Positions 5,151-33,155 are shown, numbered from the stretch's first letter. The stretch: DNA of 64,000 nt from Octopus bimaculoides (GCF_001194135.2 NC_068998.1:4684503-4748502); one strand, 5' to 3'. Translations and numbers: made by a program. The notes: generated from the sequence alone by a model not told the origin.

Positions 5151-5211
5151 GTTGTTGTGGTTGTTACTGCCTTTCGTATTCGTGCTGGTTCAGTCAGATA
5201 TCAATGTTCTT
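5151..5211 (+). CDS. FGF8/17/18: FGF signal-peptide exon (x-LLWLLLPFVFVLVQSDINVL), phase 2-0, equivalent to FGF8 exon 1B
   Basis: Long polypyrimidine tract ending TTTCGCAG| at 5150 and donor |GTAAGT at 5212. Encodes a hydrophobic h-region with a plausible VQS/D cleavage site and splices in frame to 26038. Confidence 0.72.
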
Positions 5212-7640
5212 GTAAGTATGACACCTAGAAATTAAATACTAAATGTGTGAATGCGCATGTTTGCGTGGGTTTTCGNNNNNNNNNNNNNNNNNNNNNNNNN
5301 NNNNNNNNNNNNNNNNNNNNNNNNNNNNNNNNNNNNNATATATATATATATATATATATATACATATACATATACATATATATATATATGCATAAGCGTG
5401 TATATTTATACAAGCATATATGCATATGCATATGTATCTATATGATCAGAATATCTACAAATGTGTGTGCATGCTGTTACCATGCATATCTACATACACA
5501 CAAGGACATGCATACATTCATATGTATGACTATACATATGCATATTTACACATACACGTATGTAATATACACGTATGCATACATATATACATATATATAT
5601 GTATACATACATGATATATATATATATATATATATATATATATATATCATCAGACACATACACATGCTTGTACGTATATACACATATGTATGTATACATA
5701 GTAATTATGTAATTAACCAGCTAGGGGCATCAGCATCATATCTCGTCATGTATTACTGGGAAGTCATGGAACCATCTTATTTATCTTCATTTCAAATGAA
5801 ACTGTATACTAACACATTAGCACTACAATCGGGCATCAAGTCCATTCCTCATATCTCTCTATCCATTAAACTGCATGCCTTACATAGTATATATACATAT
5901 ATATATACAATTGTCTCTCACTTCATTTGCCATGATCTAATAAATATCATCTGGTTATATTTCTTTATCTTTTTTCCGATTGACATTTTTTACTCATCGC
6001 ATGGTATGTGACTACATTTCTTTAAAACTGAATTATATTTGCCAGTATATAAACAGTAAAAACAATATTCTCAAACTGTGATATTGTTTCACCAATTATT
6101 CTGTATCTGTTCGTCTACCTGTTTTTTCTCTCCTTCTGTCGGTCTTTCTTCCGTATATATATATATATATATACACACATATATATGGCTTTGTTTGTAT
6201 GTAGGTGTGTGTATGTGTGTGCGTGTGTGTGTGTGTGTGTATATATATACATATGTAAATGCATTTATGAATAGGCATGTATGTAAGTACATCTATTTAA
6301 TCACTCTAGATATAAATGCAGATATACATGCATAACATAGCTACGAATACACATTTATATATGCGGGTGTATACATATAAATATATTAGTACAGATATGC
6401 ACACATACACATGTGTGTTTGTATATATACATATACATACATACATACATACATACATATATGCATGTGTGTATATATATGCATAATTTCTGTAACATAC
6501 ACTAACAAAGACACACATATACAAATGTATACAAATGTGTGTGTATATATATATATATNNNNNNNNNNNNNNNNNNNNNNNNNNNNNNNNNNNNNNNNNN
6601 NNNNNNNNNNNNNNNNNNNNNNNNNNNNNNNNNNNNNNNNNNNNNNNNNNNNNNNNNNNNNNNNNNNNNNNNNNNNNNNNNNNNNNNNNNNNNNNNNNNN
6701 NNNNNNNNNNNNNNNNNNNNNNNNNNNNNNNNNNNNNNNNNNNNNNNNNNNNNNNNNNNNNNNNNNNNNNNNNNNNNNNNNNNNNNNNNNNNNNNNNNNN
6801 NNNNNNNNNNNNNNNNNNNNNNNNNNNNNNNNNNNNNNNNNNNNNNNNNNNNNNNNNNNNNNNNNNNNNNNNNNNNNNNNNNNNNNNNNNNNNNNNNNNN
6901 NNNNNNNNNNNNNNNNNNNNNNNNNNNNNNNNNNNNNNNNNNNNNNNNNNNNNNNNNNNNNNNNNNNNNNNNNNNNNNNNNNNNNNNNNNNNNNNNNNNN
7001 NNNNNNNNNNNNNNNNNNNNNNNNNNNNNNNNNNNNNNNNNNNNNNNNNNNNNNNNNNNNNNNNNNNNNNNNNNNNNNNNNNNNNNNNNNNNNNNNNNNN
7101 NNNNNNNNNNNNNNNNNNNNNNNNNNNNNNNNNNNNNNNNNNNNNNNNNNNNNNNNNNNNNNNNNNNNNNNNNNNNNNNNNNNNNNNNNNNNNNNNNNNN
7201 NNNNNNNNNNNNNNNNNNNNNNNNNNNNNNNNNNNNNNNNNNNNNNNNNNNNNNNNNNNNNNNNNNNNNNNNNNNATATATATATATATATATATATATA
7301 CTATATAGGTATGAATATAGATGGATAGATAGACAGATACGTATGTGTGTGTGTTTGTGTGTGTATGTGTTTGTGCGAATTCTCCCGTCCGTATCGAGGC
7401 ATTATAATCCGAGAGCCAGCTGTTATAACTATCTACACATATGTTTTGATTTGTTTAGTAAAGCCTTCTGTGCAACAGGCAGACCTTTCGGAAAAGCTCA
7501 CAACAGCTGCTGCGAACGTTTTCCACAATCTCAATGTACCACAAACCTCGGGATTCTTTCAATCTCTTGAGTTAGGCGTCTTTGCCACCGCTTAGATTCG
7601 AAGCCACCCTGATAAGCTAAATGAACACCTGGTTATACAA

Positions 7641-7795
7641 TGTGGCTGTGTGCTTAGAAGTTTGCCTCCTGTCTACATGACTCCGGGTTCAGTCCCACTG
7701 CGTGGCAACTTTTGGAATATGTCTTTTGCTACAGCCTCGAGGTGACCAAAGACTTGTGAGTAGATTTGGTGGACGGAAACCGGAAGATGCTTATC
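7641..7795 (+). mobile_element. SINE family B 5' half
   Basis: CCGGGTTCAGTCCCACTGCGTGGCA…GATTTGGTGGACGGAAAC. Confidence 0.75.
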
Positions 7796-9807
7796 ACACA
7801 CACACATGTACATGTGTGTGCATGTATGTGTGTGCGTATAACTGTGTGTGTTAGTATAAACAACATGCTTTAATAAGAGAGGTACTGGGATCGAACCATA
7901 CGACCATAACTCCTCAAGGCTGTTCCCCAGTCTAATGACTTTAATAAGTAAAAGATACATACACAATATATATATATATATATATATATATATATATATA
8001 TATATANNNNNNNNNNNNNNNNNNNNNNNNNNNNNNNNNNNNNNNNNNNNNNNNNNNNNNNNNNNNNNNNNNNNNNNNNNNNNNNNNNNNNNNNNNNNNN
8101 NNNNNNNNNNNNNNNNNNNNNNNNNNNNNNNNNNNNNNNNNNNNNNNNNNNNNNNNNNNNNNNNNNNNNNNNNNNNNNNNNNNNNNNNNNNNNNNNNNNN
8201 NNNNNNNNNNNNNNNNNNNNNNNNNNNNNNNNNNNNNNNNNNNNNNNNNNNNNNNNNNNNNNNNNNNNNNNNNNNNNNNNNNNNNNNNNNNNNNNNNNNN
8301 NNNNNNNNNNNNNNNNNNNNNNNNNNNNNNNNNNNNNNNNNNNNNNNNNNNNNNNNNNNNNNNNNNNNNNNNNNNNNNNNNNNNNNNNNNNNNNNNNNNN
8401 NNNNNNNNNNNNNNNNNNNNNNNNNNNNNNNNNNNNNNNNNNNNNNNNNNNNNNNNNNNNNNNNNNNNNNNNNNNNNNNNNNNNNNNNNNNNNNNNNNNN
8501 NNNNNNNNNNNNNNNNNNNNNNNNNNNNNNNNNNNNNNNNNNNNNNNNNNNNNNNNNNNNNNNNNNNNNNNNNNNNNNNNNNNNNNNNNNNNNNNNNNNN
8601 NNNNNNNNNNNNNNNNNNNNNNNNNNNNNNNNNNNNNNNNNNNNNNNNNNNNNNNATATATATATATATATATATATACACATTCATTCATTCATTCATT
8701 CAGTTTTTTTGCACAGCCTCGAAGGTCTATACATATTTTTTTCTATCTCTGCTTGTCATTTCATTATTTATTTGCCTGTATGTCTCAGTATATCCCTTTC
8801 CAAATATATATATATATATATATATGTATGTATGTATGTATGTATGTATGTATGTATATATGTATATATGTATGTATACGTATATATATGAATCGATCGT
8901 AATCACCATTTCCTCCATACAGCATATCTAGAGCAAGCTTCTCCACGCTTTCTGCGTACATCTGGCAACGTTCAGTGTTCGTGCACTTTCTTTCTCTTTC
9001 AGGCGTTTCTTTTTTTTTTCCTCTGACCTAATATATTTACATATTATATAATATATTCATATCTTCAATGAAATTCAAATCTATGAACGCTACTTTCTTA
9101 TTCATTGCTTCTTTTTCCCATTGTGTCTACTTTCTTAACACACTCATTATATATATTCATGATCTATATTCGTGCATCATATTTGAGATAATTTCCATAT
9201 TATAGACATTTTCGACAAAAACATCAGTGAAACAGAAAGTGTATCTGTATTACAAGTACATACATATGTATGTTTGCATGTGTGTATATACTTATATCCA
9301 TTTATTACTATATATACGACAATCATATGTATATATATGTATGTATCTATATGTACGTGTATATGTGTATTACATTTATGTAAATATGTGTGCGTACCGT
9401 CTGTATAATATGTATACATAATGTATGCATGTATGCGTAAATAAATACTCGTATGCCAACACACATACGTATATAAAGACATGTATATGTGTATGTGTAT
9501 ATATATAAATATNNNNNNNNNNNNNNNNNNNNNNNNNNNNNNNNNNNNNNNNNNNNNNNNNNNNNNNNNNNNNNNNNNNNNNNNNNNNNNNNNNNNNNNN
9601 NNNNNNNNNNNNNNNNNNNNNNNNNNNNNNNNNNNNNNNNNNNNNNNNNNNNNNNNNNNNNNNNNNNNNNNNNNNNNNNNNNNNNNNNNNNNNNNNNNNN
9701 NNNNNNNNNATATATATAGATATATACATGTATAATTTCTTTTTCTTGTATTAGCTTCAGCTCGAGAGTTGTGGCCATGCTGAGGCACCGCCGTTAGCTT
9801 TGCTACA

Positions 9808-31997: not shown

Positions 31998-32081
31998 TTG
32001 TTGTTGTTATTATTATTATTATTATTATTATTATTATTATTATTATTATTATTATTATTATTATTATTATTATTATTATTT

Positions 32082-32844
32082 AGGTGGCTAGCTGGCAGAA
32101 TCGTTAGTATGCCGGAAAAAATGCTTAGCGGCATTTCGTCCGTTTTCACGGTCTGAGATCAAATTCCGCCGTGGTCGACTTTGCCTTTCATCCTTTCAGG
32201 GTCGATAAATTAAGTACCAGTGAAGCAATGGGGGTCGATGTAATCGACACATTCCCTCCTCCAAAATGGCTGCCCTTGTCGCAAAATTTGAAACTTATTA
32301 TTATTATTATTATTATTATTATTATTATTATTATTATTATTATTATCATTATCATTGTTATTATTATTATCAATATTAAGGCGGTGAGCTGGCAGAATCG
32401 TTAGCATGCTGGGCGAAATGCTTAGTGGTATTTCGTTTGCCCCTACGTTCTTAGTTCAAATTTCGCCGAGGTCGACTTTGCCTTTTATCCTTTTGGGGTC
32501 GATTAAATAAGTAACAGTTACGCACTGAGGTTGATGTAATTGACTTAATCCCCTCACGCAAACTGCCCTTATGGCAAAAATTTGAAGTCGTTATTATTAT
32601 TATTATTATTATTATTATTATTATTATTATTATTATTGCGAAATGGCAGAATCGTTAGCACGCCGGGCAAAATGCTTAGCGGTATTTCACCCGTCTTCAA
32701 GCTCTGGGTTCAAATTCTGCCGAAGTCAACTTTGCCTTTTATCCTTTCGGGTCGATAAATTAAGTACTAATTAAACACTTGGATCGATGTAATCGACTAG
32801 TCCTCTCCCCTAAAATTGCTGCCCTTGTGGCAAAATTTGAAACC
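32082..32844 (+). mobile_element. Three head-to-tail SINE family A copies (32082-32294, 32379-32588, 32638-32844) separated by (ATT)n
   Basis: The three copies are mutually alignable, each ending AAATTTGAA followed by an ATT tract. Confidence 0.9.
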
Positions 32845-32903
32845 ATTATTATTATTATTATTATTATTATTAATTGTTTTTACATTTTTCTGTCTTCTTG
32901 CAG

Positions 32904-33155
32904 AGAAATCCCAAGATATTCAGATGTATATTTGTCGCAAGAATGATGAACGGAACATACATATTTCAGTTAGCATCATTTCAAAGGTGGGCCGTTGGTT
33001 TCCGCAAAAATGGCCGTCCTTTACGAGGGCACAAATACAGCACCCAGAGGCGAAAATGTTTCGAGTTCTATCTTCGAGTCAGAGACAGCCCTAAAGAAAA
33101 TTTTTCCCCAATCAAAGACCCCATTTTCCTATCGGCATTGAAAACAAATCGATAA
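32904..33155 (+). CDS. FGF8/17/18: FGF last coding exon (RNPKIFRCIFVARMMNGTYIFQLASFQRWAVGFRKNGRPLRGHKYSTQRRKCFEFYLR...TNR*)
   Basis: Acceptor TTTTTCTGTCTTCTTGCAG|, phase 0. Seven residues precede the Cys, as in FGF8 SNGKGKDC. WxxGFxKxGRPxxG is the heparin-binding loop motif. Stop TAA at 33153-33155. Confidence 0.93.
   Translation, partial: RNPKIFRCIFVARMMNGTYIFQLASFQRWAVGFRKNGRPLRGHKYSTQRRKCFEFYLRVRDSPKENFSPIKDPIFLSALKTNR

Follow-up and report, generated by a model that had tools for sequence, protein, structure and literature searches.

Which gene lies in a gapped 64 kb stretch of Octopus bimaculoides scaffold (NC_068998.1:4684503-4748502; 36% GC, 28 runs of N), and how much of its structure can be read from the DNA alone? 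A preliminary description of this stretch, referred to throughout as the window, had proposed a hidden gene of the fibroblast growth factor (FGF) 8/17/18 type, spliced from four short exons, of which only the last and the signal-peptide exon fall in listed open reading frames (ORFs). We find it very likely that the window carries the last five coding exons of an FGF8/17/18-class ligand gene of O. bimaculoides. RefSeq holds a protein of 229 residues from this species, XP_014774625.1, named 'fibroblast growth factor 18-like isoform X1', and when this protein was searched against the window by tblastn the five in-window coding exons translated with 100% identity to it.

Because each proposed exon is 100% identical to XP_014774625.1, the gene is already annotated, and the O. 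bimaculoides FGF8/17/18 gene model is known and present in RefSeq. The word 'hidden' is therefore apt for a prokaryote-style ORF track and not for RefSeq, which already holds the model. As a gene call nothing is added, given the existing RefSeq model; the value lies in a check on reading from sequence alone, which rebuilt a multi-exon gene over 28 kb of gapped scaffold with its splice phases and exon homologies correct. A protein word-index search with the spliced peptide returned three clusters, namely XP_014774625.1, an Argonauta hians hypothetical protein of 237 residues, and an Octopus vulgaris cluster with a member named 'Fibroblast growth factor 8b-like isoform X3'. Lophotrochozoans possess FGF8/17/18-like genes, and a mollusc is expected to have an FGF8-class ligand (PMC3420111). 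The searchable literature yielded no functional work on an FGF8/17/18 ligand of any cephalopod, and the octopod gene is therefore functionally uncharacterised.

The exon chain and its product

Reading of the flanks bears out the coordinates and the GT-AG borders of all four exons first proposed (5151-5211, 26038-26203, 31749-31849 and 32904-33155). The acceptors are, in order and with a slash at the border, ...tttcgcAG/G, ...tctctAG/T, ...attgcAG/C and ...cttgcAG/A, each preceded by a polypyrimidine tract; the donors are /GTAAGT, /GTAAGA and /GTAAGT. Splicing is in frame as claimed: frame +1 of the concatenated exons gives a single open peptide of 192 residues, LLWLLLPFVFVLVQSDINVL/SYNYS...SENSEH(A)SLTIQ...LILR/RNPKIF...LKTNR, which ends at a TAA, and the other two frames are full of stops. 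The intron phases of 2,0,1,0 are also correct, because the first base of exon 5151-5211 finishes a codon begun upstream. With the fifth exon, which is taken up below, the gene runs through the window as follows (exon lengths in nucleotides, nt).

1-5150, plus strand: 3′ part of the intron between the ATG exon (1A-like, outside the window) and the 1B-like exon; acceptor ...ttatttcgcAG, with the AG at 5149-5150
5151-5211, plus strand: 1B-like exon, 61 nt, encoding (R)LLWLLLPFVFVLVQSDINVL; phase 2 upstream and phase 0 downstream; residues 18-38 of XP_014774625.1 at 100%
5212-18059, plus strand: intron with 8 assembly gaps
18060-18116, plus strand: cassette exon, 57 nt, phase 0/0, encoding NNEGLIPAGPNRAYATIPM; 100% by tblastn, recovered by exact chain reconstruction
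18117-26037, plus strand: intron with 2 gaps
26038-26203, plus strand: 1D-like exon, 166 nt, ending in phase 1; residues 58-112 of XP_014774625.1 at 100%
26204-31748, plus strand: intron with 3 gaps
31749-31849, plus strand: exon 2, 101 nt, encoding (A)SLTIQYGPFGMVRIRGSENKYMCFNQKGRLILR and ending in phase 0; placed by its borders and by tblastn at 100%
31850-32903, plus strand: last intron, with three tandem repeat units of about 295 bp at 32001-32882
32904-33155, plus strand: coding part of exon 3, 252 nt including the stop TAA at 33153-33155; inside ORF 32874-33155
33209-33224, plus strand: two AATAAA hexamers, 54-64 nt past the stop; a pattern match only, in AT-rich DNA

The 1D-like exon supplies the helical N-terminal region and the opening beta strands (SYNYSAYLARHK...SENSEH), and exon 3 the remaining beta-trefoil, a basic segment of heparin-binding type (RKNGRPLRGHKYSTQRRK) and the C-terminal tail. 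The two hexamers are possible polyadenylation signals.

Membership of the FGF family was confirmed with Pfam (PF00167), where the match reached E=6e-18 and 65.5 bits against a cut-off of 24 and covered profile positions 7-120 of 124. An AlphaFold2 run on an alignment of 26 sequences gave a mean predicted local distance difference test score (pLDDT) of 80.8, with values above 90 over residues 81-205. The model has short helices at 61-67 and 70-75 ahead of the first strand, and the cassette region at 38-51 is disordered (pLDDT <50). When the structure was searched with Foldseek the best matches were FGF18 (4cjm; template modelling score 0.91, root mean square deviation 1.6 A, 131 columns) and FGF8b in its complex with FGFR2c (2fdb; E=5.6e-13, 150 columns). 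As modelled, the protein is a complete beta-trefoil of the FGF family, and would consist of a short helical N-terminal region followed by a complete trefoil of the 12-strand type.

The preliminary description had read a signal peptide together with a complete trefoil. The trefoil stands on both AlphaFold2 and Pfam; the signal peptide was read only in part, since the ATG exon supplies residues 1-17 and exon 5151-5211, which has no ATG, encodes the hydrophobic core and the cleavage region only. As read from the sequence, the whole leader has a basic n-region (K10, R11, R18), a hydrophobic core of 13 residues (LLWLLLPFVFVLV) and V-Q-S at -3/-1. It aligns with the leaders of relatives and is modelled by AlphaFold2 as a helix at 16-35. 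By the -3/-1 rule cleavage is predicted after VQS33, and the putative signal peptide would be split by the phase-2 intron.

By homology, the octopod FGF would be secreted and act as a paracrine signal. Its basic segment RKNGRPLRGHKYSTQRRK aligns with TRKGRPRKGSKTRQHQRE of FGF8, and the basic beta10-beta12 region may bind heparan sulfate; the ligand would dimerise an FGF receptor tyrosine kinase and signal through Ras-MAPK in development. Secretion, receptor and heparan-sulfate binding and a developmental role are thus predictions for this protein.

A probable cassette exon behind the predicted signal peptide

Compared with XP_014774625.1, the peptide first read lacks two segments, residues 1-17 from the ATG exon and residues 39-57 (NNEGLIPAGPNRAYATIPM). 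The second of these maps at 100% to 18060-18116, an exon that the preliminary description did not contain; its borders are ...ttattctAG/AAC...ATG/GTatag, and it is in phase 0 on both sides. At the same position the Argonauta hians protein has a homologous segment, KSEGLYLPGREQAFATIPR. The cassette is included in O. bimaculoides X1 and in the Argonauta model and skipped in O. vulgaris X3, and the product has 229 residues with it and 210 without. Because O. vulgaris X3 joins DINVL straight to SYNYS, which is the exact junction of the four-exon splice, that splice is the isoform that leaves the cassette out, minus residues 1-17. In the proposed processing the pre-mRNA would be spliced from an off-window ATG exon through the 1B-like exon, an optional 57-nt cassette, the 1D-like exon and exon 2 to exon 3, and inclusion of the cassette would add 19 residues directly past the signal-peptide cleavage site.

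A single isoform would also account for these models. Either the four-exon splice is the sole product and the cassette is a prediction artefact, or the cassette is constitutive and it is the skipped form that is the artefact; both forms are known from computational models alone, and O. vulgaris X3, the one model that skips the cassette, has an odd truncated C-terminus. Against this, the cassette is open, in phase 0/0 and flanked by canonical AG/GT borders, and its protein sequence is conserved between Octopus and Argonauta (9/19 residues identical) at the same position, which is unexpected for chance intron sequence. We therefore regard a single isoform as unlikely, though it is the strongest of the alternatives considered here.

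The end of O. vulgaris X3 is an observation in its own right. The model finishes ...FQR/MMLQPGHGGSICTYFCEKT, implying a cryptic donor (AG/gtgggc) inside the last exon at about 32985-32990 that would truncate the beta-trefoil. The alternative terminal exon of X3 was not found in the window.

If there are two splice forms, where did the optional exon come from? Alignments and searches gave no convincing similarity between the cassette and vertebrate exon 1C, other vertebrate N-terminal exons or the N-termini of other spiralian proteins. Moreover, at the Lingula locus, the single spiralian one mapped, no annotated isoform has an exon at the cassette position. The octopod cassette is therefore probably an independent gain. 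The annotated isoforms of other spiralian FGF8/17/18 genes vary by alternative first (ATG) exons and not by a cassette past the signal peptide. As in vertebrate FGF8, the 1B-like and 1D-like exons have an optional exon between them, at the position that mammalian exon 1C reportedly holds in the mouse gene structure (Crossley & Martin 1995; MacArthur et al. 1995). An octopod cassette exon in this place is mildly new. Unlike vertebrate FGF8, the octopus gene showed no alternative acceptor of FGF8a/b type.

Octopods would have one more exon, an optional one, in the stretch of the gene from which vertebrates produce functionally distinct FGF8 isoforms. FGF8a and FGF8b, which are N-terminal splice forms, differ in receptor affinity, developmental output and patterning activity (PMC4826393), and by analogy a comparable role is possible for the cassette. 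Only tentatively do we suggest the fuller proposal, that octopods independently evolved a truly alternative 57-nt cassette in their FGF8/17/18 gene, in the same intron as mammalian 1C, after the exon that completes the signal peptide and ahead of the one with which the receptor-contacting N-terminus begins, and that it tunes receptor binding in parallel to the vertebrate FGF8 isoforms; we think it doubtful as a whole. If true, cephalopods and vertebrates would have arrived convergently at tuning the receptor affinity of FGF8-class ligands by isoform.

Adjoining the cassette insertion point, the 1D-like exon encodes N-Y-S at 26044-26052. By ungapped offset the octopod N-Y-S/T (Octopus and Argonauta) lies -29 to -27 from the first beta strand, the same offset as N-F-T of vertebrate FGF8. 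This N-F-T contains F32, the receptor-contact residue specific to FGF8b. The match in offset may be a coincidence, because the N-Y-S/T motif is not present in the other spiralian FGF8/17/18 proteins compared in the same way.

Placement among FGF subfamilies

Is this an FGF8/17/18 gene, or one of another FGF subfamily that attracts the name? Four lines of evidence agree on the FGF8/17/18 class that had been proposed. In a ranking of PDB sequences FGF18 (4cjm) scored 59.7 bits and FGF8b (2fdb) 58.8, the next FGF family 43.5, and FGF1/FGF2 30-37. An exhaustive HMMER search of 1.84 billion representatives recovered 155 proteins at E<=0.001. All 19 of the named matches were spiralian, arthropod or vertebrate proteins of FGF8/17/18 type, generic 'FGF' or uncharacterised proteins, and none of the 19 was named as another FGF subfamily. 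The best non-octopod matches, at 30-39% identity, came from Patella, Pomacea ('FGF18-like'), Terebratalia ('fgf8/17/18'), Aplysia ('FGF8'), the chiton Liolophura, Lingula ('FGF8') and vertebrate FGF18/FGF8; names among the lower matches were 'FGF17', 'FGF18-like' and 'ths'. Against a labelled set, phmmer scores were 38-84 bits for FGF8/17/18-type proteins, about 29 for human FGF1 and FGF2, 18.5 for FGF9 and 15.9 for FGF10; over the PDB ranking and the labelled set together, FGF8/18 reached 58-84 bits.

The fourth line is a neighbour-joining tree (BLOSUM62 distances, 179 columns, 200 bootstraps) with human FGF1, 2, 4, 9, 10, 13 and 19 as outgroups. The sequences used for FGF1, 4, 9, 10, 13 and 19 matched PDB chains at scores consistent with their identity, and that used for FGF2 matched no PDB chain at E<=1e-103; the FGF2 and FGF8b sequences are unconfirmed. 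The FGF8/17/18-type set, octopods included, was separated from the seven human FGFs in 199/200 bootstraps, and all 200 kept the seven human subfamilies out of the clade of octopod, spiralian 8/17/18 and vertebrate 8/18 sequences. The node joining the octopods to human FGF8b had 72.5% support with no outgroup inside. The octopod branch fell among the protostome sequences, outside the vertebrate FGF8+FGF18 clade. The octopod protein was not nested with FGF18 in this tree, which shows no one-to-one relation to vertebrate FGF18, and the 'FGF18-like' label of XP_014774625.1 is a best-hit name. The most fitting term for the octopod gene is pro-orthologue of the FGF8/17/18 group as a whole.

Exon layout provides a further comparison. 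Four loci were mapped by exact exon-chain reconstruction and are set beside the window here (coding exons in nt, with the cassette and its phase in parentheses).

Lingula anatina FGF8: 80, 40, 187, 107, 363; phases 2,0,1,0
Pangshura tecta (turtle) FGF18-like: 32, 31, 178, 107, 261; phases 2,0,1,0
Anabas testudineus (fish) FGF8: 32, 37, 181, 107, ...; phases 2,0,1,0
Zootoca vivipara (lizard) FGF8, core: 181, 107, 288; phases 1,0, the 5′ end of the model being unreliable
Window, octopus: 53 (inferred), 61, (57), 166, 101, 252; phases 2,0,(0),1,0

The phases 2,0,1,0 recur in all the complete maps, and in a joint alignment the two core introns occupy identical columns. Octopus, Lingula and lizard FGF8 have the phase-1 intron at one and the same alanine codon column, and the last phase-0 intron in a common column before RNPK/SNDD/SNGK. 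Because phases and core intron columns are shared with the mapped loci, the correspondence of the octopus exons to 1B, 1D, 2 and 3 holds as first drawn. The phase-2 intron also lies in the same column in octopus and Lingula, at an arginine codon of the signal peptide. The 101-nt exon 2 of octopus is the 107-nt exon of the other FGF8/17/18 genes minus two codons, and the alignment to FGF8b has two one-residue gaps, which match this deficit. As in vertebrate FGF8/17/18, the predicted signal peptide is interrupted in phase 2 at the end of the ATG exon and is completed by a short second exon. The human FGF8 gene is made up of six exons (1A-D, 2 and 3), and its alternative splicing takes place within exon 1 (PMC2741033).

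Vertebrate FGF8 and FGF18-like genes, the brachiopod gene and octopod genes all have the five-exon layout with a phase-2 signal-peptide intron, an argument for its origin before the protostome-deuterostome split. No other FGF subfamily is known to have a 5′ exon subdivision of the FGF8/17/18 style. As an independent character, the shared subdivision points to FGF8/17/18 as well, and the 5′ exon layout can usefully serve as a structural marker when divergent invertebrate FGFs are to be placed in the 8/17/18 class.

Likeness to vertebrate FGF8/FGF18 extends to the fold and the best structural matches. Compared with vertebrate FGF8, however, identity over the core is only about 26-35%, the octopod gene is about 20-30 times longer, and the octopus protein has two extra conserved cysteines (RSRC, RRKC) that are common to its spiralian relatives. 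The FGF8/17/18 proteins of Terebratalia, Lingula, Aplysia, Pomacea and Liolophura are the closest non-octopod relatives by HMMER, and share with the octopod protein the cysteine pattern and the motifs KYLCF..KGRLI, W.VGF and KC..F; the octopod branch is much longer than theirs. Among the protein-search matches there was no recognisable orthologue from squid, cuttlefish or Nautilus. Either the cluster that groups sequences with the query at 50% identity conceals decapodiform orthologues, or these are missing from the collections or very divergent.

Several points weigh against reading the window as the last five exons of an FGF8/17/18 gene. The protein is divergent, its nearest non-octopod relatives being those listed above, and its position within the protostome FGF8/17/18 group is weakly placed, with 2% support for a spiralian clade. 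The exon junctions are those of gene models (RefSeq/Gnomon and others) and of conservation. The exons lie on four contigs joined by scaffolding alone, and the ATG exon was not found in the window.

The first two of these points could favour a member of another subfamily, such as FGF9/16/20 or FGF1/2, or a lineage-specific FGF, for which the FGF8/17/18 label would be an artefact of best hits. The long branch, the low identity to the closest non-octopod matches and the poor bootstrap support within the clade count in its favour, and Oulion et al. 2012 found lophotrochozoan FGF orthology difficult to resolve (PMC3420111). The gap in bit scores between FGF8/18 and FGF1/2, FGF9 and FGF10 speaks against it, as do the bootstraps that keep the seven human subfamilies apart and the five-exon layout, with its signal peptide split in phase 2, that is common to FGF8 and FGF18-like genes. 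Moreover, a putative secretory leader can be read, of a kind that FGF1/2, 9/16/20 and 11-14 are not known to have. Another subfamily is thus very improbable, and assignment to FGF8/17/18 is retained.

Scaffold order, gene length and surroundings

No exon touches a run of N. All gaps are intronic, and the reading frame across them is therefore irrelevant. The nearest lie 64 nt past the 5211 donor, 89 nt before the 26038 acceptor and 55 nt before the 31749 acceptor; further gaps in the range, beyond those listed by program, are at 13205-13336, 15304-15313, 19114-19363, 25939-25948, 27580-27812, 28375-28384 and 31659-31693. The four contigs that bear coding exons are 3918-5275, 15314-19113, 25949-27579 and 31694-34289; exons 2 and 3 are the sole pair on a common contig. 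Since N makes up 2,315 of the 20,826 bases in 5212-26037, intron lengths are estimates. The proteins of O. vulgaris (GCA_951406725.2) and Argonauta hians (GCA_054771915.1) have the same segments in the same order with no frame breaks. Because two independent octopod assemblies give collinear proteins and the order matches that of exons across the family, the scaffold order is accepted. That exons of different contigs, or a pseudogene copy, have been strung together into an mRNA that does not exist would suit the N runs between the four contigs, yet it is barely conceivable given that the reading frames are all intact, 10/10 splice dinucleotides are canonical, the segments ascend on a single strand in the order typical of the family, and the O. 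vulgaris (94-95% identity) and Argonauta (71-77%) models are collinear without frame disruption.

The FGF8/17/18 gene so ordered most likely begins outside the window. Its ATG exon encodes residues 1-17 (MISLPYPTIKRFHLDHN) and two bases of R18, from which a length of 53 nt is inferred. In the window, tblastn at E<=100 gave no credible match to residues 1-17, returning only chance matches of 50% on the wrong strand. In O. vulgaris the gene extends over 197 kb, and in Argonauta, where two contigs carry it, over 175-177 kb; from the 1B-like exon to the stop here is 28 kb. Relatives with genes of this size (175-197 kb) make it most likely that the ATG exon is far upstream of the window. The pre-mRNA would then be very long: it covers at least 28 kb of the window, and its full length is probably about 175-200 kb.

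Two other starts were considered. In principle the ATG exon could lie inside the gap at 3447-3917, which is less likely given the gene ranges in relatives. The ATG at 5050, in ORF 4951-5232 and in frame through the 1B acceptor, was rejected, because the reading frame there runs through the T-rich polypyrimidine tract, read as Phe/Leu, and because MISLPYPTIKRFHLDHNR is common to three octopods.

The length of the octopod FGF gene is itself unusual, the fish, lizard, turtle and Lingula genes being about 5-18 kb long. A separate observation concerns first exons. The annotated FGF8/17/18 isoforms of Lingula, Liolophura and Pomacea differ solely in alternative ATG exons, and in protein alignments they converge immediately ahead of the signal peptide's hydrophobic core. 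For Lingula, which alone of the three was mapped on DNA, this point is a phase-2 intron, flanked in the mapped locus by exons 2001-2080 and 11477-11516. The octopus ATG exon joins at the same position as these spiralian alternative ATG exons.

Lastly, we surveyed the rest of the 64 kb for other genes. Rfam gave 0 matches and ARAGORN 0 tRNAs, and none of ten among the longest complex ORFs, taken from both strands, matched Pfam. The remaining window is AT-rich and microsatellite-rich, with interspersed repeat families. In the last FGF intron, the three tandem units at 32001-32882 are 78-85% identical and each opens with a (TTA)n run; single copies of this element occur at 168-410, 37631-37778 (minus strand) and 46765-46914 (minus strand). 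A family resembling short interspersed nuclear elements (SINEs), of about 130-310 bp and 76-86% identity, is found in both orientations, and its translations recur in the ORF list as '...LPKVPRSGTEPGTMW...'. It has no tRNA match by ARAGORN and no Rfam match. Its copies are as follows.

2979-3314, 7642-7787, 36150-36305, 39346-39766, 42754-42881, 44945-45105, 56381-56658 and 63321-63552, both orientations among them: SINE-like family

ORFs across a further pair of repeats of 250 bp (for example 59586-59775) have no Pfam match. The two copies of this pair, at 1442-1694 and 59431-59685, are 85.6% identical and may be the remnant of a transposon.

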